Below are positions 1,447 through 28,966 of a stretch of DNA of 64,000 nt, piece after piece. How positions within the stretch are numbered: position 1 is the first letter of the stretch; each line of letters opens with the position of its first letter. The translations under genes and the position numbers were made by a program. Where the stretch lies: sequence record MN988561.1. One strand, 5' to 3'. A model generated the notes under the pieces. The model saw only the letters and a program-made list of their open reading frames with translations, was not told the origin of the DNA and ran no database searches.

Positions 1447-2221
1447 AGGTAAGGACTACTACGATAGTGCTCTTGCATTCGGACGAGATGAGTCTATCAT
1501 CTTCGTACGTAAGAGTGAGACGCTGAGTCGTAAAGATGCCAGAGAGCGTCAACTATCCTATACAGGTATGCATTGGACTCCTACGATTTACATGAAGAAT
1601 CATCGAGGAGATACCATGAAGAATCATCGAGGAGATACCATCAAGAAAGATATGAGCACATGGAAGCATCCTGATGGTCATTCTATAACGATGGATGCGA
1701 TATCTATACTTCTTGCAGGTAAGCTTTATCGTGGACTGAAGACCACCAAGAAGGCTCACTGGACTCATGGTAGTCTATCTGACGAGATTGAGATCTTCTG
1801 GGCTAAGGACTCTTTCACAAGATACATGAACAAGCACGACATGTATCCGTTTCAGTCTGAGTCCTTCACTCATCCGAATTCTACGATTGACATGTACTTC
1901 TTGCCTGACAATCAGACTCAGCAGAAGACGATGGAGTTTATGATCGAACATAAGATGTCGATCATGACAGTTGACGATAGTGTAGGTGAGTGGCACGATC
2001 CTAATGGATATGTCGTCATCGATGGAGATAACCTGAAGGACTACTGCTTGCAGAAGATCGTAGGTCCGTATACGGTTATGCAGGAATTGTCAATGTGGAT
2101 CGGAGGAGTTCTTCCTAAGGATGGACCTCCTATGGTTCAGATCGAAGATGACAAGACCAAGATCAAGAAGCATGGCATGGATCGTTGGTCATTCAGAAAG
2201 ATGGGATCTAAATCCAGATGA
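1433..2221 (+). CDS. Hypothetical protein with an internal 8-aa duplication
   Basis: GGAGG SD at 1419-1423 favours ATG 1433; MKNHRGDT x2. Confidence 0.7.
   Translation: MKLIKGKDYYDSALAFGRDESIIFVRKSETLSRKDARERQLSYTGMHWTPTIYMKNHRGDTMKNHRGDTIKKDMSTWKHPDGHSITMDAISILLAGKLYRGLKTTKKAHWTHGSLSDEIEIFWAKDSFTRYMNKHDMYPFQSESFTHPNSTIDMYFLPDNQTQQKTMEFMIEHKMSIMTVDDSVGEWHDPNGYVVIDGDNLKDYCLQKIVGPYTVMQELSMWIGGVLPKDGPPMVQIEDDKTKIKKHGMDRWSFRKMGSKSR
1592..1639 (+). repeat. Exact 24-bp tandem duplication
   Basis: ATGAAGAATCATCGAGGAGATACC twice (1592-1615, 1616-1639), in frame. Confidence 0.97.
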
Positions 2222-2420
2222 CTGCAAGTGCACTTTTGAGAATCAAGGATTCGCATCTCGTCATTCCTCATATCATTCATGTATCTTCTGTCAGAGAAGA
2301 TGGATTTGCTAAGATATATGAGGTGACGATGTCAAGCGGTTTGAGAATAGATATGCATGATAACATATTAACTAAAGAACGACTCCTAGAGGAGATCGAG
2401 GTTTACTGGAGGAATAGATA

Positions 2421-3071
2421 ATGGAAATTCGTAGGTTTATCGGAGACGTACACGGTAAGTACTCTCAGTACAAGAAGATCCTGAAGGAGTCTCCATATCC
2501 TACGATTCAAGTTGGTGATATGGGAGTAGGCTTCTACGAAAGAGATCGTGTTACTCATGAGATCAAGGCATCTGCCAATCCTCCGTATGATCTCATGGTG
2601 AAAGCTGAAGCTAGATTCGAAAGAGGTAATCATGATAATCCGAGAGTATGTAAGAATCATACTCAGTGGATTCCTGATGGCCATACAGAGACAATCGGTA
2701 AGTCTAAGGTCATGTTCATTGGAGGTGGCCTCAGTATCGATCGTGGAATGCGTATCGAAGGTGAATCTTGGTGGCCGGATGAAGAACTCAGTATGACTGA
2801 GTTGTATGATATGGTCGACAAGTATGCTGAATATCGTCCAGACGTTATGGTAACTCATGACTGCCCAGACATTATGGCTGCTATTATCTTCGGTGTGACA
2901 GATAAAGGTAATTATCCATCACGTACTCGGCAGGCATTTCAATCTATGTTCGAGATCTATCAACCTAAATTGTGGATCTTTGGTCATTGGCATAGGTCAG
3001 CCAGGTATCATCACAACGGAACGAAATTCATATGCTTAGCAGAATTAGAATACTTGGATATCGAACTTTAA
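2421..3071 (+). CDS. Calcineurin-like metallophosphoesterase
   Basis: GDVHG, QVGDMG, RGNHD, VTHDCP, FGHWH motifs in canonical order. Confidence 0.92.
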   Translation: MEIRRFIGDVHGKYSQYKKILKESPYPTIQVGDMGVGFYERDRVTHEIKASANPPYDLMVKAEARFERGNHDNPRVCKNHTQWIPDGHTETIGKSKVMFIGGGLSIDRGMRIEGESWWPDEELSMTELYDMVDKYAEYRPDVMVTHDCPDIMAAIIFGVTDKGNYPSRTRQAFQSMFEIYQPKLWIFGHWHRSARYHHNGTKFICLAELEYLDIEL

Positions 3072-3083
3072 ATGAACTCAGTG

Positions 3084-3127
3084 AATGCAGATTAGCGATA
3101 CAGATAATGGCATTGCTAATCTGCATT
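3084..3127. repeat. 16-bp intergenic inverted repeat (hairpin)
   Basis: AATGCAGATTAGCGAT (3084-3099) pairs with ATTGCTAATCTGCATT (3112-3127), one G-T pair. Confidence 0.85.
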
Positions 3128-3367
3128 GATTTCTGGGTAGCAGTCCTGAAATATGGTTTCAGACTATGGTGAATAAGATGTTTCAAGACAACGTATCAAA
3201 GGTCCTCAAGCCTTCCTCTGAGTGGAGCGTTCTGAAGAACGTTACTGTTATGGATCCTGATGGATGGGATCGTCAGAACTTCGAGATCAGTTGGAATGAA
3301 TTGATCTCAGAGGAAGAATTCGATCGACGTGCAATGATGTCAACTGTACTCTTTGTTAGGAAAGACG

Positions 3368-4096
3368 ATGTTCAATCTGACATTAGCTAAATTTGTACTC
3401 GAAGCTCATAAGTCTGATAAAGACATCACCAGTCGTAATGGATACGGTGGATACAATATCCACAAGGAATCTTATGGATTTCTTCAGAAGATTGAGAAGA
3501 AGTTCGGAGCTAAGAGTGTAGCTGATCTCGAACGAATGATCAAGAAAGAAGAGACCAGACGTAAGACTCCTGTACCAGATCCTAATCCGATCTACAAGAA
3601 TCAGCGTGCTCGGTATCGTCTTCTCAGAGACTATCTTGGAAATAGTTCAGACCTGAATGTTTACATCAGCAGCCAGGAATGGGACGTACATAACTATTTA
3701 GGTCAAGGATGGGTTGAGAAATTTAAGAGTGATTCCATTCTCCACCGTTGGTGCTGGAATGTGATGAAGCTCCAGTTTGATCTCGATGCTTTGATCATCA
3801 AAGTGCGTACTCATTCTAATGTTGTAGGCTTCGAGAAAACTAATGAAGAGAATGATATCACCTGGACTGAATTCGTCCTAGGTGAGCAAGCTCTCAATAA
3901 GTATATTGAGATCCTGGAGATCCGTGCTAATCGTAAAGCTGAACGTGAGTACGAAGAGCATCAAGAGTATCTTCGTCGTCTAGCTATTGAAGATTGGAAA
4001 CGTGAACAGTTAGCTAAGATTCGTCTTGTACAAATCAGAGACGATGTCAAGGATAAGTCTCGAGCTGACAAAAGGAAGAGGAGAGTAGCAGTATGA
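3368..4096 (+). CDS. Hypothetical protein, charged helical C-terminus
   Basis: ORF track 3353..4096; ATG 3368 follows AGGA. Confidence 0.65.
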   Translation: MFNLTLAKFVLEAHKSDKDITSRNGYGGYNIHKESYGFLQKIEKKFGAKSVADLERMIKKEETRRKTPVPDPNPIYKNQRARYRLLRDYLGNSSDLNVYISSQEWDVHNYLGQGWVEKFKSDSILHRWCWNVMKLQFDLDALIIKVRTHSNVVGFEKTNEENDITWTEFVLGEQALNKYIEILEIRANRKAEREYEEHQEYLRRLAIEDWKREQLAKIRLVQIRDDVKDKSRADKRKRRVAV

Positions 4097-4785
4097 CTAA
4101 GATTCGACATATTTCTTTCGACGTATGGAATACTCTAGTAATTCCTAATCCAGATTATGCCAGAGCACGATCCATGTACCTTGGTAAGGTATTCGATATG
4201 GTCTCGGAGGATTCTGCTAAGCTCTACTCGAGAGTTAAAAAGTGGATCGATGAACTTGCTGTCCAGACTGGTATGGGTCCTGATGCTGAGAGCAATGTAC
4301 TCATGCTTCTGAATACGGCTGATCGTTATGCAGATCCTCAGGAGATCCTTATTAACTTTGAGAATCTCTTCTTCAAGTATCCTCCGATTATTCATCATGC
4401 AGTACGTGATGGACTTCGTACGCTGAAGCATCACGGGTATACGTTCTCCGTTGCTAGCAATAGCAATTTCATATCTGGCAGAACGATGACTAAGTTCATT
4501 CATGCTGAATTTGGATGCATGGCTTATGAAGTTTACTCTGATCTCGAAGGTTATGCTAAGCCTCATCTCAGATTCTTTGAAGAAGTATTTCATGGTGCGA
4601 GGTTACAAGGTCTCGCAGACTACTCGAGTGAAATTCTACATGTCGGAGATCACGAGATCTGTGACGTGAAGGGTGCAAGCGACTACGGATTTAAGTCATT
4701 ACTTTTCACCAATCCTGAAGATATGTCCAAAGTTATTAAGAGAGTCCAGCAAAATGAACAACCACCAAGTGTATTATGCGCATAA
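4093..4785 (+). CDS. HAD-superfamily hydrolase
   Basis: Motif I ISFDVWNTL, motif II SVASNSN, motif III KPH, motif IV HVGDHEICDVKGA. Confidence 0.9.
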   Translation: MTKIRHISFDVWNTLVIPNPDYARARSMYLGKVFDMVSEDSAKLYSRVKKWIDELAVQTGMGPDAESNVLMLLNTADRYADPQEILINFENLFFKYPPIIHHAVRDGLRTLKHHGYTFSVASNSNFISGRTMTKFIHAEFGCMAYEVYSDLEGYAKPHLRFFEEVFHGARLQGLADYSSEILHVGDHEICDVKGASDYGFKSLLFTNPEDMSKVIKRVQQNEQPPSVLCA

Positions 4786-5608
4786 ATTTACTTCTATGGA
4801 AGATCTTCCATTCGATGCTGTAGACTACTGTGCTCTTAAGTTCGGATCTGACGAGGTAGCTCGTCGATTTGGATATGAATTAGCTGAGAAGTTCTTCGAG
4901 GAACATTCCAGTCGAATCGTGACGAATCATTGTGCAGTGATTCCATCTCCTTATAACTTCGTACCGAATGCAGCAACCATTCTATCGAAGCATTTCATTA
5001 ATCGTCTGAATGAACTCATCGTTGAGGTCAATGGCGATTACGTTGACTACGTTAGAATCCATCGTAAGGTCACATATACTGGTGACTTTGGTAAGCTCAA
5101 TGAGGATGCTCGTCGAAAGCTTATTGGACAGGATTCATTCTATGTCAACAAGCAGATTCTGAAGAATAAGCTCCTGATCTACTTGGACGACGTGATCATT
5201 ACTGGTGCTCACGAAGATCGTCTCAAGGAAGTCATGGTCAAGAACAAGATGAAGAATGATTGTTTCTTCGTCTACTATGGTAAGTACTTCGGTACTGAAC
5301 CTACGATCGAGAATAAGATCAACTTCGGAGGTATTGAAACTGTCGAAGATTATGTTAATTTTATTACCGATCGAGATCATCTCATTGTTCGTCCGATCAA
5401 GTACCTCCTAAGTCTACCTAATGAACAATTTAAGTTCTATCTCAACAAGACAAGTAGAACTCGTCTTGAGGAACTATTCCACTCATGCTTAGGTGAAGGG
5501 TACAATCGTATTCCTCAGTACCAGGAGAATTTTGTAGCTCTGAGAGATCAGGTCAAGTATCTGTCTGAAGAGAATAGAGTATCTCGAATTTATGACAAGG
5601 TAGGTTAA
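4754..5608 (+). CDS. ComF-like phosphoribosyltransferase (PRTase_3-like)
   Basis: PRPP-binding loop LIYLDDVIITGAHE; N-terminal Y..LKFGSDEVARRFGYELA; ATG 4754 likely start. Confidence 0.75.
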   Translation: MNNHQVYYAHKFTSMEDLPFDAVDYCALKFGSDEVARRFGYELAEKFFEEHSSRIVTNHCAVIPSPYNFVPNAATILSKHFINRLNELIVEVNGDYVDYVRIHRKVTYTGDFGKLNEDARRKLIGQDSFYVNKQILKNKLLIYLDDVIITGAHEDRLKEVMVKNKMKNDCFFVYYGKYFGTEPTIENKINFGGIETVEDYVNFITDRDHLIVRPIKYLLSLPNEQFKFYLNKTSRTRLEELFHSCLGEGYNRIPQYQENFVALRDQVKYLSEENRVSRIYDKVG

Positions 5609-5856: not shown

Positions 5857-6420
5857 ATGATCTTTAGTCTTAGTAATTCAGAATACTTCAGTCTTGCAGA
5901 TGCAGTATGCACAGCTGAAGACTCTCAAGGTCGAGTACCTGTTAACAAGAATATCGTCAGGAAACTTATTACATATCTCGAAGCTGAGAAGTTCTTTAAT
6001 CTCGGTACGGTATGTTGTGTATTGCTACCAGTCGAAGATGGTCTACTATTGATTCGTCGTAATCGTAAGAGTGATCCTGGATTTGGTATGGTAGCACTTC
6101 CTGGTGGATTCCAGAAGGGTAAACAAGCTCAAAATATGTACGATGCTGCAGTAGAAGAAGTCCTAGAAGAGACAGGGATCGTAATTCATAAAGAGAATCT
6201 AAAGCTCGTGTACGGCGATACGGACGAATATGAGCACAATGTTCTATTCTTCTTGCATAATGGTCTACTTGGTAAGGCATCAATGTACATTGAGAAATTC
6301 GTACCTTCAGATGACGAGGTATCGGAGCTAGTCTACATTACTGAGCCTGTTGATACTGCATTCCCAATGCATAGTGAACAGATCAAGAAATTCTTCGAGA
6401 AGAAGTTCGCTCGACGATAG
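5857..6420 (+). CDS. Nudix hydrolase
   Basis: LLLIRR...ALPGGF...AAVEEVLEETG Nudix box. Confidence 0.9.
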   Translation: MIFSLSNSEYFSLADAVCTAEDSQGRVPVNKNIVRKLITYLEAEKFFNLGTVCCVLLPVEDGLLLIRRNRKSDPGFGMVALPGGFQKGKQAQNMYDAAVEEVLEETGIVIHKENLKLVYGDTDEYEHNVLFFLHNGLLGKASMYIEKFVPSDDEVSELVYITEPVDTAFPMHSEQIKKFFEKKFARR

Positions 6421-7927: not shown

Positions 7928-8719
7928 ATGAATAATCCTTTCAGCAAGAACATGATGGACCGTATGTTCAAGCAGGTCGACGGTGTCGTCTGGGACCTGA
8001 TGTCTGGTTCGAAGATCGGTATCAAGACGAAGGAAGGTATTGCTACTGTCGATCTCAATCTCGAAGATGAGACTGCAGCAGTAGCTCCTGTCAAAACGAC
8101 TCGTCGTAAGGCAGGTGCAGAACCTGTAGCTCCTCTCGCTATTCCTACTCCGTCTCCGATCATGGAAGCTCCGGATGCTCAGGTTTCGATCAATCTGTTC
8201 GATGACTTCGGTATGGCTCTGCCTGCATTCGCTCAATCGACTCCTGTCGAGGCTATCGGTCTCGGCGACATGATCTGGAACTCGGCTCAGAATCGTGTCA
8301 TGGGATGGGTCGTCAAGGTCAGTCCCAATCGTAAGAGCTTCAAGGTCCTCAAGACGGATGGTACTCGTAGCGAGTGGTCTCCTCCGAAGGTCAATGTACT
8401 CGGATTCGAGACTGGTACGATGGTCGTACGTTCTCTGATCAACATGCTTCCTGGTGGAGCTACTGGTCAGAATGGTCTGGAAGGTATGCAGTCGTCTCTC
8501 GGTCAGATGCTCATGATGTCGTCCATGATGGGTGGCAGTGAAGGTGACTCTGAGAACATGCTCAAGGACATCATGCCGATGATGCTCATGTCGCAGATGG
8601 GCATCGGTGGTGCTCAGGGTGGTATGGGTCAGATGATGCAGACCATGATGATGATGAAAATGATGGGTGGTATGAATCGCGGTAGCGGTGGTACCAAGCG
8701 TAGTTTTTTCGACAACTAA
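7928..8719 (+). CDS. Met/Gly-rich low-complexity protein (263 aa, short isoform)
   Basis: AAGGAG SD then ATG 7928; central SH3/KOW-like segment (IGLGDMIWNS...GWVVKV); C-terminus GQMMQTMMMMKMMGGM. Confidence 0.85.
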   Translation: MNNPFSKNMMDRMFKQVDGVVWDLMSGSKIGIKTKEGIATVDLNLEDETAAVAPVKTTRRKAGAEPVAPLAIPTPSPIMEAPDAQVSINLFDDFGMALPAFAQSTPVEAIGLGDMIWNSAQNRVMGWVVKVSPNRKSFKVLKTDGTRSEWSPPKVNVLGFETGTMVVRSLINMLPGGATGQNGLEGMQSSLGQMLMMSSMMGGSEGDSENMLKDIMPMMLMSQMGIGGAQGGMGQMMQTMMMMKMMGGMNRGSGGTKRSFFDN

Positions 8720-8780
8720 GCTCTGATTCTGGAGAGGATGGATCTCGGATTAGACTCCGAGATCTGTCTTCGGAGCTTAG
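8704..8780 (+). other. Predicted programmed -1 ribosomal frameshift signal
   Basis: Slippery heptamer T_TTT_TTC (8704-8710) in phase with 7928..8719; 5-nt spacer; stem-loop 8716-8780; the -1 frame opens right after TAG 8701-8703 and stays open to 9147. Confidence 0.75.
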
Positions 8781-9147
8781 ACATCTCCGTATCGTAGGAG
8801 AGACATATAGATCACGGTATGCACAAAATGTGTATCGTGATGTTAAAGAAAATGATCCAGTCATCCTCGAATGGGAGAAGACCAATCGTATGGATGGATG
8901 TGCTCATAAGGTCTTCGTCTACGATCCAATCAATGAACGAGGTACCCATGTAGGGTATGTCGACCGAAATCAAGCAGCTAGGATTGTTAGTGAACTTGCC
9001 AAGTATAAATACACTGAGAAAACTCATCGTATTGTTGGTAAGATCACGAGGAACAATCCTGGTAAGTACAACGAAATCGAGATACTAGGACTCATCAGCA
9101 CTACAGAGTCTGAACAGCATCTCAAAGATTATTATAGAAGGAAATAA
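8710..9147 (+). CDS. HIRAN domain, predicted as the -1 frame extension of 7928..8719
   Basis: IVGETYR...VILEWEKTNRMDGCAHKV...HVGYVDRNQAARI matches the HIRAN pattern (V.G..Y...V.L..E..N..D..A..V....GY.....A); IVGETYR lies upstream of the only canonical in-frame start (GTG 8830), which has no SD. Confidence 0.75.
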   Translation, partial: RQLSSDSGEDGSRIRLRDLSSELRHLRIVGETYRSRYAQNVYRDVKENDPVILEWEKTNRMDGCAHKVFVYDPINERGTHVGYVDRNQAARIVSELAKYKYTEKTHRIVGKITRNNPGKYNEIEILGLISTTESEQHLKDYYRRK

Positions 9148-9151
9148 CCAC

Positions 9152-10075
9152 ATGGGTGGCGGACGTTTTGATACTAATGCATATGCAAGCCTGTCGACTG
9201 CTCGTACAGTTCGTACTGACGGTACTCGTATGCATCACACTGAAGTCTTCAAAGCTAAGGTCGTGGATAGCAAGTTCTCTCCTCGCAGCATCAAGGTACG
9301 TGAGTCGGTTGACTCTGAGACATCTCCGAATTCTCGTCCGATCATCGTCGGTCTTGACTTCAGTGGATCGATGGGATCGATTGCAGGTGAGATGGCTAAC
9401 AATCAGCTTGGTAAGCTGATGGAGAATGTCGTTGGTACGAAGGCAGTAGCTGATCCTCATCTGCTGTTCCTCGGTATCGATGACGTTCATGCATCCTTCT
9501 CGTCTGAATCTCTTCAGGCTACTCAGTTCGAAGCTGATATTCGTATCGCTGAACAGCTGACTGAACTGAAGAATATCGGTCGAGGTGGAGGTAATGGATT
9601 CGAATCCTACAATCTCGCATGGTACTTCGCTGCATACAAGACGAAGATCGACTCCTTCAAGAAGCGTGGTAAGAAGGGACTCCTCTTCACTATCGGCGAT
9701 GAAGGTGTACCTGCAGATTTGAATGCATCTCATCTTGAGACTGTCTTCGGATCAGGTGATCTTCCTGTTCTCAGCAACGATAGTCTCCTGAGCACTGTTC
9801 GTCAGGAATGGGATGTATTCCACATCATTGCTGAGGAAGGTGACTACTGCAGAAATGGTAGTAGCCATGTCAGCAGGCAGTGGTATGGTCTCCTCGGCAA
9901 TCGTGCTATTCTGATGAGCGACTATCGCTACGTCTCGGATATCATCGTTGCTACGATCGCTGTCAATGAAGGTCGTGATCCGGATGATCTCCTGTCTTCT
10001 TACGAGGACAAGGAAGCTCGTAAGGTTATCGAGCGTGCACTCTACGGTATGCGAGATTTCGCTAAGTCTCTGTAA
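9152..10075 (+). CDS. von Willebrand factor A (vWA) domain protein
   Basis: MIDAS IIVGLDFSGSMG, GGGNGFESY, LLFTIGDEG; N-terminal MGGGRF. Confidence 0.88.
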   Translation: MGGGRFDTNAYASLSTARTVRTDGTRMHHTEVFKAKVVDSKFSPRSIKVRESVDSETSPNSRPIIVGLDFSGSMGSIAGEMANNQLGKLMENVVGTKAVADPHLLFLGIDDVHASFSSESLQATQFEADIRIAEQLTELKNIGRGGGNGFESYNLAWYFAAYKTKIDSFKKRGKKGLLFTIGDEGVPADLNASHLETVFGSGDLPVLSNDSLLSTVRQEWDVFHIIAEEGDYCRNGSSHVSRQWYGLLGNRAILMSDYRYVSDIIVATIAVNEGRDPDDLLSSYEDKEARKVIERALYGMRDFAKSL

Positions 10076-10175: not shown

Positions 10176-11426
10176 ATGAAGAATGCTCATATCGTTATTG
10201 GTGCACAATACGGAGATGAAGGGAAGGGTAGTACTGTTAATCTCCTTGCTCAGAAATATCCAGATGCATTGAATGTCAGGTTCAATGGTGGAGCTCAAGC
10301 AGGACATACTGTGACACTCGAGGATGGTCGTCGTCACGTATTCTCTCACTTTGGATCAGGTAGTCTCCAAGGACTGGATACGTATTTCAACGAGTCTTCC
10401 ATCGTGAATCCTTGGAGATTCAAGGATGAGCATACTGTAATCATGAGTGAATTCGGTCTGAGTCCTCTTGTTTTTGTACATGAGAATGCTCTGGTCACGT
10501 CGCCATACGATATGGCAATCAATCAACTCTGGGAGACTTGCCGTAGTGGAGATCGTCACGGATCCTGCGGTATGGGTATTTATGAGACGATCCTGAGATC
10601 TCGTAATCCTGAATCTCTTGTACGAGTACATGAACTAGTTTATCATGTCTTTGAAGACATCAATGATCGGTACAAAGAATATGCGTATCGTAGACTCCAA
10701 GATGTCAGGGATTTTCATCCTGACTGTGAAGAATTCATTAAGGATACTGAGAAATTTATTGATAGTGAAGATGTTACTCGTCAGTTCTTTCTCGACTATT
10801 CATTCTTCATGTCGATGATTAATGTTGTTAAAGACGATATTAATATCTATCCGCAGTACGATACTGTGATCTTCGAAGGAGCTCAAGGTCTCCAACTCGA
10901 CCAGAATTATGTTGAGTATCTAGGTAATCTGCCTCATGCTACTCCATCCAATCCTGGACTAGGTAACAAGTCACTCCACGATGCATTCGAGAAGTATGGT
11001 CTCACTGAAGACCATATTCACGTGTACTATCTGACGAGATTCTATCAGACTCGTCACGGTAATGGACCATTCGATCGTGAGGTTAATCCTGACGCTCTAG
11101 GCGACATTGTTGATCTCACCAATATCGACAATCCTCATCAAGGATCGATTCGGTATGCTCCACTCAATGTCTTCAGTCTACTCGAAGCAGTCGAGTTCGA
11201 TCTTCAGTACATCGATAACTGCAGACCATATCTTGTGGTCACATGTGTTGACCAAGTTGTCAACGATGAAGTTGTCATCAAAGCATTGCATGATGACAGT
11301 CACGTTAAGATTCCATTCGAGGATTTGAAGATGATCCTACGGGATAACTTTGAATTCATGTACGGTATCTTCTACTCTGACGGAAAATCTATGAAATACG
11401 AGGAACATCTTTATGTCGCAGCATGA
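10176..11426 (+). CDS. purA: Adenylosuccinate synthetase-like protein (divergent PurA clade)
   Basis: GAQYGDEGKG, RFNGGAQAGHT, IFEGAQG, TRHGNGPF; Asp-binding loop and TKLD motif diverged (TNIDNPHQGSIRY; TCVD). Confidence 0.85.
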   Translation: MKNAHIVIGAQYGDEGKGSTVNLLAQKYPDALNVRFNGGAQAGHTVTLEDGRRHVFSHFGSGSLQGLDTYFNESSIVNPWRFKDEHTVIMSEFGLSPLVFVHENALVTSPYDMAINQLWETCRSGDRHGSCGMGIYETILRSRNPESLVRVHELVYHVFEDINDRYKEYAYRRLQDVRDFHPDCEEFIKDTEKFIDSEDVTRQFFLDYSFFMSMINVVKDDINIYPQYDTVIFEGAQGLQLDQNYVEYLGNLPHATPSNPGLGNKSLHDAFEKYGLTEDHIHVYYLTRFYQTRHGNGPFDREVNPDALGDIVDLTNIDNPHQGSIRYAPLNVFSLLEAVEFDLQYIDNCRPYLVVTCVDQVVNDEVVIKALHDDSHVKIPFEDLKMILRDNFEFMYGIFYSDGKSMKYEEHLYVAA

Positions 11427-28162: not shown

Positions 28163-28966
28163 ATGTACTGGATTCTGCAGGACTTCGAGGACAATCATAA
28201 ACTCGGAGACGTTCTCGAGAGAATGGGTAAGGAGTATTCCTACCACAAGGTCGTACCATTCGTAGGTGAGCTCATGCCTAAGCCTACGGACATTGTTGAA
28301 CTCGACCGTGTGGTCATGTTTGGGTCATATAGTCTGAGACATTACGCTAAGAAGCATGGATATACTCCAGGAGTATTTAAACTCAATCCGTACTTCGATG
28401 AATCAAGATGGTGGCCATATCTTCTGAATGGTCCTCACAATATGAAGACTGCTGAGCTCAGAGATTTGTTGTATGAACTTCAGATCAATCCTCAGGAAGC
28501 ATACTTCATACGTCCTGTCGAGGATAGTAAGGAGATTGCAGGTCGAGTAATGGATCGTCAAGAGATCATCGACATGGTTGAAGGAGTACTAGCTCTCGAA
28601 CCTAATGAGTTGATCGGAGGGTCTCTCGCTCCTCAGACAAGAATGATGTTCGGTGAACCTCAGAAGATCACTCGTGAGTGGAGACTCTGGGTAGTTAACG
28701 ATAAGATCATTACTGCAAGTCTCTACAAGGAAGGATCTCGTGTAGTCTATCGAGAAGAACTGGATCCGTATGCTGAGGAGTTCGCTAAGTTCGTTATCTC
28801 TCTGAATCCTAAGTACTCTCCTGCATATGTTCTTGACATTTGTCGTACGAGAGATAGCTACAAGATCATTGAGACGAACTGCATTAATGCTGCAGGGTTC
28901 TATGCTGCTGATCTTCAGAAGCTAGTGATGGCTATCGAAGAACTCAACCACTGGGATATCGTATGA
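28163..28966 (+). CDS. ATP-grasp domain protein (DUF4343/R2K-like)
   Basis: YFIRPVEDSKEIAG, EWRLWVVNDKIITASLY, YVLDIC, IIETNCINAAGFY. Confidence 0.85.
   Translation: MYWILQDFEDNHKLGDVLERMGKEYSYHKVVPFVGELMPKPTDIVELDRVVMFGSYSLRHYAKKHGYTPGVFKLNPYFDESRWWPYLLNGPHNMKTAELRDLLYELQINPQEAYFIRPVEDSKEIAGRVMDRQEIIDMVEGVLALEPNELIGGSLAPQTRMMFGEPQKITREWRLWVVNDKIITASLYKEGSRVVYREELDPYAEEFAKFVISLNPKYSPAYVLDICRTRDSYKIIETNCINAAGFYAADLQKLVMAIEELNHWDIV

Follow-up and report, generated by a model that had tools for sequence, protein, structure and literature searches.

The window analysed here comprises the first 64 kb of the genome of Rhizobium phage RHph_TM61 (MN988561.1, 203 kb; Kleczkowskaviridae, Cuauhnahuacvirus), hereafter TM61, nine sister phages of which are known at 96–100% identity. 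It contains a gene labelled adenylosuccinate synthetase (AdSS) by both GenBank and JGI, the product of which belongs to a divergent PurA-like clade termed PAL here. On the same strand, the gene is preceded by g2, which encodes a protein of the vWA fold, by a small open reading frame (ORF) with a HIRAN domain and by g16 (Table 1). Comparison of the PAL genes of TM61 and the sister phage TM30 revealed 37 synonymous against 9 non-synonymous codon differences, indicating that PAL is under purifying selection and is not a decaying copy.

The Pfam profile PF00709 matches TM61 PAL with an E-value of 4e-34, covering residues 6–305 only (profile positions 1–278 of 416). Against the curated NCBIfam PurA equivalogs, PAL scores 99.6 bits for NF002223 (cut-off 402) and 88.4 bits for TIGR00184 (cut-off 395.6), about four-fold under the cut-offs, with only the N-terminal two thirds aligned. 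The PurZ profile NF038379 gives 35.8 bits, compared to a cut-off of 300. The AlphaFold2 model of PAL has a predicted local distance difference test score (pLDDT) of 90.4, from a 46-row alignment. A Foldseek search with this model yielded whole-length superpositions on AdSS structures, with TM (template modelling) scores of 0.62–0.72 and E-values down to 7e-21; the AdSS structures rank before those of PurZ, PurZ0 and the short archaeal PurA. Since the model superposes on AdSS over its whole length, the C-terminal third is predicted to be an AdSS domain diverged in sequence and not a new domain.

To assign the active-site residues, PAL was aligned with Escherichia coli PurA (from NC_000913.3) and phiVC8 PurZ, using the numbering of TM61 and of the mature E. 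coli protein, and the residue roles were carried over from E. coli PurA via the sequence alignment. The roles of Asn38, Thr129, Arg143′ (5′-phosphate) and Arg131 are those described for the E. coli enzyme. In AdSS, Arg303 touches both the 2′-OH of inosine monophosphate (IMP) and aspartate, and the tip of the Thr-rich loop touches aspartate and is conserved even in PurZ (PMC8342488). PAL retains the motif GDEGKG with D14 and K17 and the motif AGHT with H44; the equivalents kept (TM61/E. coli) are D14/D13, K17/K16, H44/H41, Q237/Q224 and T256/T239. The aspartate loop is remodelled. Here DLTNIDNPHQGSIRY (residues 313–327) stands opposite KQGNEFGATTGRRRR, anchored by N316 (N295), G323 (G302) and the GWLD/APLN block, and the loop is one residue shorter in TM61. 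Thr300 corresponds to H321, Thr301 to Q322 and Arg303 to a gap or S324, and the GATTGRRRR loop of PurA becomes N319-P-H321-Q322-G323-S-I-R326, with the RRRR run reduced to one Arg. A second alignment moves the loop by 1–2 residues, and T-T-G-R is restored under no placement. The GTTGRG block reads GSCGMG in an ungapped region (about 128–135), replacing T128 by S130, T129 by C131 and R131 by M133. In the guanine motif, TCVD (residues 356–359) stands opposite TKLD, with K331 replaced by C357 and D333 retained as D359.

The same pattern was found in three sets of homologues: the best 120 of 3,719 matches of a word-based protein search (metagenomic, approximately 35–44% identical, about 400 residues), 79 bacterial PAL reached via the neighbouring gene g2 and hence independent of the PAL query, and 77 PAL from viral contigs. 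The Thr300/Thr301 tip, Arg303 and Arg131 are missing from TM61 and across the sets of 120, 79 and 77 homologues. The equivalents of Asp13, Lys16 and His41 are present throughout, D14, K17 and H44 being invariant in the clade. Among the 120 sequences, D14, E15, K17, H44, T45, Q237 and T256 are invariant or nearly so. Residues foreign to PurA are just as constant: Q41, H128, S130, E137, R141 and H294 occur in 120 of 120 and C131 in 118. In the aspartate-loop region, T315, N316, Q322 and R326 are found in all 120 and N319 in 114, and position 321 is always aromatic; position 357 is Cys or His, and position 359 is Asp in 115. The replacements N38Q (Q41), T128S/T129C, V273H (H294) and T301Q and the shrinkage of RRRR to a single Arg recur in the three independent sets, invariant or nearly so, and are therefore far beyond chance. 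TM61 itself departs from the family consensus at few non-catalytic positions, such as M406, where 108 of the 120 have Arg. In the column of Asp13, the PurZ and PurZ0 proteins of phiVC8, SH-Ab 15497, BCSR129, Wawa and Hiyaa carry Ser, whereas TM61 and all other PAL carry Asp. At Asp333, PurZ enzymes that use ATP have His or Asn, whereas PAL has Asp. The original prediction, made from the letters of the window, had pointed to the retained catalytic Asp and His, the remodelled GATTGRRRR region, the TCVD reading of TKLD and the Ser of PurZ, and all four observations were reproduced, the loss of K331 to Cys or His being family-wide.

Judged from these alignments, the residues predicted to carry phosphoryl transfer (P-loop, Lys, Asp base and His acid) are kept in PAL, together with the purine-positioning Gln237 and part of the phosphate site (Thr256). 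The residues that would hold aspartate in PurA and PurZ (Thr-Thr tip, Arg303, Arg131) are replaced, as are some putative IMP phosphate and ribose residues (Asn38, Thr129, Val273). The replacement set consists of Gln41, Ser130-Cys131, His294, Asn319, an aromatic residue followed by Gln322, and the single Arg326.

A maximum-likelihood tree was built from 44 sequences, namely 27 PAL (3 phage, 11 bacterial and 13 metagenomic), 12 canonical PurA, 3 PurZ and 2 PurZ0; 11 of the 12 PurA came from the same genomes as the bacterial PAL, and the archaeal short PurA were left out, so the position of the root is not fixed. The tree resolved three clean groups with supports of 100/100 for PAL, 98/94 for PurA and 100/99 for PurZ plus PurZ0. 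TM61 PAL lies outside both the PurA clade and the PurZ plus PurZ0 clade, in agreement with the original prediction that it is neither a canonical PurA nor a PurZ. The eleven bacterial genomes with the module (Anaeromicropila, Massilia, Competibacter, Rhizobium esperanzae, Dyadobacter, Drouetiella, an acidobacterium, a melainabacterium, Paracoccus, a Chlorobiota member and Acetobacter) each carry one full-length PurA (542–620 bits) and one PAL (130–173 bits, N-terminal part only). PAL thus invariably accompanies a true PurA as an additional copy and is not the AMP-synthesis enzyme of the bacterial cell. PAL is a distinct, widespread and uncharacterised clade of the AdSS superfamily. Full-text literature searches found no publication on the PAL clade or the vWA-PAL module. 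A survey of phages counted 481 PF00709 homologues, with 251 sequences in a PurA group (almost all prokaryotic) and 151 in a PurZ group; the relevant passages of that survey do not name the remaining ones (PMC12884076).

PAL works in a conserved module with an upstream vWA protein that bears a metal ion-dependent adhesion site (MIDAS) and with a third partner, either g1 or g16. In TM61, PAL lies directly 3′ of the vWA protein on the same strand, and the upstream third partner is g16. TM61 g2 shows 39% identity (E 1e-75) to a 307-residue ORF located just upstream of PAL in Anaeromicropila populeti, and the g2-PAL pairing was also found on three other long contigs from metagenomes as well as in Vibrio phage phiKT1024 and mycobacteriophage I3. 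Searching the GTDB species genomes with g2 gave at least 586 matches. The order g2 then PAL, on the same strand, holds in 79 of 80 bacterial loci (GTDB) and 77 of 80 viral loci (IMG/VR, the contigs of which can include misclassified bacterial fragments), and no fusions between module genes occur in these 160 loci. Because ORF calls start at the most upstream start codon, some lengths are overestimated.

The g2 protein matches phrog_2971, a PHROG of no known function. A PDB profile search with g2 gave no match, Pfam gave none for g2, g16 or g1, and the ESM Atlas returned weak vWA leads for g2 and no match for g16. The AlphaFold2 model of g2 (pLDDT 91.7) matches vWA domains only in Foldseek, namely integrin I-domains, NorD, Ku80 and CMG2, with a probability of 1.00. 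Across the g2 family the MIDAS motif D69-x-S/T71-x-S73 is conserved, and the N-terminal M1-G2 is invariant in 46 of 46 sequences. The third gene, 5′ of g2, is g1 in 64 of 80 bacterial and 33 of 80 viral loci. It encodes about 350 residues, with an N-terminal J-domain containing the HPD motif and a protein-kinase-like domain in which the catalytic-loop Asp is replaced (HNAIT-DN); its best PDB matches include the pseudokinase VRK3 and the J-domains of DnaJ and CbpA. In TM61, phiKT1024 and 21 viral loci the third gene is g16, the TM61 protein being 39% identical to that of phiKT1024. BLAST found no relation between g16 and g1, and no g1 homologue was found in the TM61 genome. None of PAL, g2, g16 and g1 matches the PADLOC models; the module is thus not a listed defence system. 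In TM61, g16 and the HIRAN ORF are about 110 nt apart. A small ORF occupies the position of the latter in 9 of the 21 viral loci of the g16 type, and one of these resembles the TM61 HIRAN ORF by BLAST.

Table 1. PAL, its module partners and a nearby Nudix gene in the TM61 window.
Feature	Position	Strand	Length (aa)	Description
PAL (PurA-like protein)	10176..11426	+	416	EVB64_019; product name 'adenylosuccinate synthetase' in MN988561.1; full AdSS fold
g2, vWA-fold protein (phrog_2971)	9152..10075	+	307	MIDAS D69-x-S71-x-S73; N-terminus MGxxRWxxxDW; directly upstream of PAL
Small HIRAN-domain protein	8830..9147	+	105	between g16 and g2
g16	7928..8719	+	263	Met/Gly-rich C-terminal tail; phage-type third partner in place of g1
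Nudix hydrolase	5857..6420	+	187	weak likeness to the Nudix half of phage NMNAT-Nudix proteins; 1.5 kb upstream

The flanking ORFs were clustered after shadow ORFs in GC-rich loci had been filtered out. The sole recurrent bacterial neighbour is an NrtR-family regulator of about 245 residues (NUDIX plus NrtR winged-helix), present in 40 of 80 loci, mostly divergently transcribed, and likewise at the Anaeromicropila locus. On viral contigs, the commonest neighbours are Nampt (NAPRTase plus NAMPT_N; 14 loci) and a bifunctional NMNAT-Nudix protein (12 loci). Both are concentrated at modules of the g16 type. One or both flank the module directly in about 15 of the 21 viral loci of this type, with a typical order of NMNAT-Nudix, g16, g2, PAL and Nampt. 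These two genes form the phage NAD+ salvage pair NARP2 (bioRxiv 10.1101/2024.02.11.579819); neither that report nor later NARP papers mention a PurA-like or vWA gene. NARP3, also considered, is an unrelated PnuC/NadR pair (PMC13464706). Nampt was found in none of TM61, phiKT1024 and I3; an NMNAT-type domain is absent from TM61 and I3, and present in phiKT1024 away from the module. The Nudix hydrolase gene upstream of g16 (Table 1) is a possible remnant of an NAD-salvage context. The link of PAL to NAD is one of guilt by association, drawn from two independent directions, the bacterial regulator and the phage pathway genes, and we infer it for the family and not directly for TM61.

Therefore, PAL probably does something other than make AMP. 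As the explanation that we prefer, with moderate confidence, we propose that PAL is a GTP-dependent ligase with a non-aspartate partner, acting in an NAD/ADP-ribose-linked module with the vWA protein and the third partner. The first half-reaction of AdSS would be retained, GTP phosphorylating the 6-oxopurine-type carbonyl of a nucleotide. The phosphate would then be displaced by a nucleophile that is not free L-aspartate, and the product would not be adenylosuccinate. The altered pocket may be lined by His294, Asn319, the aromatic residue, Gln322, Cys131 and Gln41. In bacteria, the module might be induced via an NrtR-type repressor that senses ADP-ribose; in phages, it might be co-expressed with Nampt and NMNAT-Nudix, which would rebuild NAD+ during infection.

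With the determinants of aspartate binding lost, the most economical reading is that PAL uses a co-substrate different from free L-aspartate, or else a different substrate, and the absence of three or four arginines speaks against a dicarboxylate as the partner. Since the Asp333 equivalent (D359), the S-x-G element and the P-loop are kept, GTP remains the best guess for the nucleoside triphosphate (NTP). The original prediction that the amine donor and/or the NTP differ from those of PurA thus gains support for the donor; its NTP part is not settled. Several points weigh against our proposal. The alignment of the aspartate loop is uncertain by 1–2 residues, and Arg326 could partly replace Arg303 or Arg305. 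As TM61 itself lacks Nampt and NMNAT, it is tied to NAD only through its family. Partners of the vWA and J-domain kinds are not what is usual for an enzyme of small molecules and might hint at a non-metabolic role. A more specific version of the proposal, that PAL joins a GTP-activated purine nucleotide to a non-aspartate amine, a chemistry new for the fold, and thereby provides an ADP-ribose/NAD-responsive module common to bacteria and large phages with its output or signal, is speculative and distinctly improbable. Candidates for the amine would be ammonia, making PAL a one-step IMP-to-AMP synthase, or, more radically, the invariant, Met-processed N-terminal Gly of g2, giving an N6-linked nucleotide-protein conjugate.

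The partners of PAL could also be understood if it were no longer a ligase. PAL would then be a GTP-/IMP-binding switch or, by analogy with MoxR-vWA pairs such as NorQ-NorD, an NTPase partner of the vWA protein, and the J-domain would recruit Hsp70 to a protein-remodelling or sensing device. This fits the obligate pairing of PAL with the MIDAS-bearing g2, the NorD vWA domain among the structural matches of g2, the J-domain and the kinase-like domain without catalytic Asp in g1, and the remodelled substrate pocket. However, the residues of acceptor chemistry (Asp14 base, His44 acid, Gln237, and Thr256 of the IMP site) are invariant in more than 270 sequences, and the residues that now form the pocket do not vary either, as is usual for a defined ligand site. 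In addition, the GTPase activity of AdSS is negligible without an acceptor. We regard such a switch as unlikely, giving it some weight because partners of the vWA and J-domain kinds would be compatible with a role in regulation or one directed at proteins.

PurZ and PurZ0, which arose from the AdSS fold in phages (PMC8342488; PMC12884076), set a precedent for a PurZ-like role of PAL, in which it would produce a non-canonical purine deoxynucleotide destined for the phage genome. Arg303, the reader of the ribose 2′-OH, is absent from PAL as from PurZ, and TM61 encodes a YfbR-like HD hydrolase (PF12917, 49.8 bits; DatZ family) at MN988561.1 149222–149707. However, about 139 kb separate the HD gene from PAL, with which it forms no cluster, and a PurB-type lyase was searched for in TM61 and not found. 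PAL keeps Asp14, whereas all phage PurZ and PurZ0 carry Ser (our alignments; PMC12884076), and the aspartate loop tip kept even in PurZ (PMC8342488) is absent. PAL also forms a separate clade, and bacterial chromosomes commonly harbour the same module alongside a normal PurA. No Z-cluster genes (datZ, mazZ or dutZ/dmtZ, Z-polymerase) accompany TM61 PAL, which is surrounded by g16, the HIRAN ORF, the gene for the vWA protein and genes of unknown function; its partners are of the vWA and J-domain kinds and not nucleotide-pool enzymes. A PurZ-like role is accordingly very unlikely in our judgement. The original prediction had framed PAL as a phage-specific repurposing for a modified DNA purine. 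This framing is not upheld, the clade being at least as common in bacteria, and PAL being tied firmly to a vWA protein together with either a J-domain pseudokinase or a Met/Gly-tail partner, and linked to NrtR and NAD-salvage genes instead of genes of the DatZ/MazZ/DpoZ type. Finally, the database annotation would make PAL an ordinary, merely divergent AdSS that raises the AMP supply during infection, with which the retained catalytic core and fold agree. It hardly fits the four-fold deficit under the PurA equivalog cut-offs, the loss of Arg303, Thr300, Thr301 and Arg131, the constant presence of a true PurA beside bacterial PAL or the separate clade at 100/100, and we consider it the least probable of the explanations.

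Similar to PurA (EC 6.3.4.4; PF00709, TIGR00184), PAL shows the whole-chain fold, GDEGKG with the catalytic Asp, the His of AGHT, the equivalents of Lys16, Gln224, Thr239 and Asp333, and the TRxG strand. It differs in its aspartate loop, N-x-aromatic-Q-G-x-L-R instead of GATTGRRRR, in a hydrophobic residue at the Arg131 position, in a short C-terminal domain, in its fixed place beside a vWA gene and in being a separate clade that, in bacteria, is a paralogue accompanying the true PurA. With PurZ and PurZ0, the succino-amino-deoxyadenylate synthases of Z-genome phages (NF038379), PAL shares the character of a phage-borne AdSS offshoot, a shortened C-terminal domain and the lack of an Arg303 equivalent at the ribose. 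In PurZ and PurZ0, Ser takes the place of Asp13, the Thr-rich aspartate loop is retained and the genes are grouped with datZ, mazZ or dutZ/dmtZ and with a polymerase specific for Z, whereas PAL keeps the Asp, lacks the Thr-rich loop, forms its own clade and neighbours genes of the vWA, J-domain and NAD kinds. P-loop NTPases recurrently form pairs with vWA/MIDAS proteins, as in the MoxR-vWA systems, e.g. NorQ-NorD. PAL resembles these pairs as a P-loop nucleotide-binding protein genetically locked to a MIDAS-bearing vWA protein, a likeness that draws on the Foldseek match list; unlike them, its NTPase has the AdSS fold with an intact acceptor site and is not an AAA+ ring. In the case of phage NAD+ salvage (NadV/Nampt plus NatV/NMNAT-Nudix; NARP2), TM61-type modules are embedded in or adjoin this gene pair in the loci counted above. 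However, the published pathway consists of two genes with no PurA-like or vWA role (10.1101/2024.02.11.579819, in which the word 'adenylosuccinate' does not occur), and TM61 lacks both.

Repurposing of the AdSS fold in phages has been known once, in PurZ and PurZ0, which opened the Z-genome field. PAL is a second and much larger offshoot, with a differently rebuilt pocket and fixed protein partners. Its partner gene g2 occurs in the genomes of at least 586 bacterial species, on hundreds of viral contigs and in about 200 mycobacteriophages of cluster C. The chance that the PAL module holds genuinely new chemistry is modest. Lying within NAD+-salvage clusters in phages and next to NrtR in bacteria, PAL is a concrete candidate, open to testing, for a component that is missing from NAD+/ADP-ribose physiology as it plays out in the conflict of phage and host. 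PAL is miscounted in metabolic reconstructions and in surveys of Z-genomes based on PF00709 or phrog_1211. In RefSeq records of the sister phages (e.g. NC_070966.1 10623–11873), PAL is wrongly named '2-aminooxy adenylosuccinate synthetase', the label of phrog_1211, which was intended for PurZ, and Rhizobium and Vibrio records, as well as about 200 from mycobacteriophages, give PAL the same name. As phrog_1211 merges PurZ and PAL, Z-genome surveys built on it would overcount.

In cluster C mycobacteriophages, represented by I3, the g1-type module comprises gp270 ('kinase'), the vWA-like gp271, the small gp272 and gp273 (PAL), at 1472–5320 of the stretch examined. It adjoins the polynucleotide kinase gp268, and the I3-type PAL is the most basal branch of the PAL clade in the tree. 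TROVE/Ro60-like proteins (DUF2828, DUF7788 and VWA_2) lie directly upstream of g1-type modules in seven viral contigs (about 3000–4560). In phiKT1024, a TROVE/Ro60-like protein (8403–9911) is located 2.3 kb downstream of PAL and a NADAR gene 2.3 kb upstream of PAL. The TM61 window also carries, at 3368–5608, adjacent genes for a 242-residue protein, a HAD hydrolase (4093–4785) and a ComF-like PRTase_3 phosphoribosyltransferase (4754–5608; PF15610, E 9e-46), with a DUF4343 protein further on (28163–28966). The combination is reminiscent of the 'nucleoside-like metabolite' biosynthetic module associated with Ter operons.

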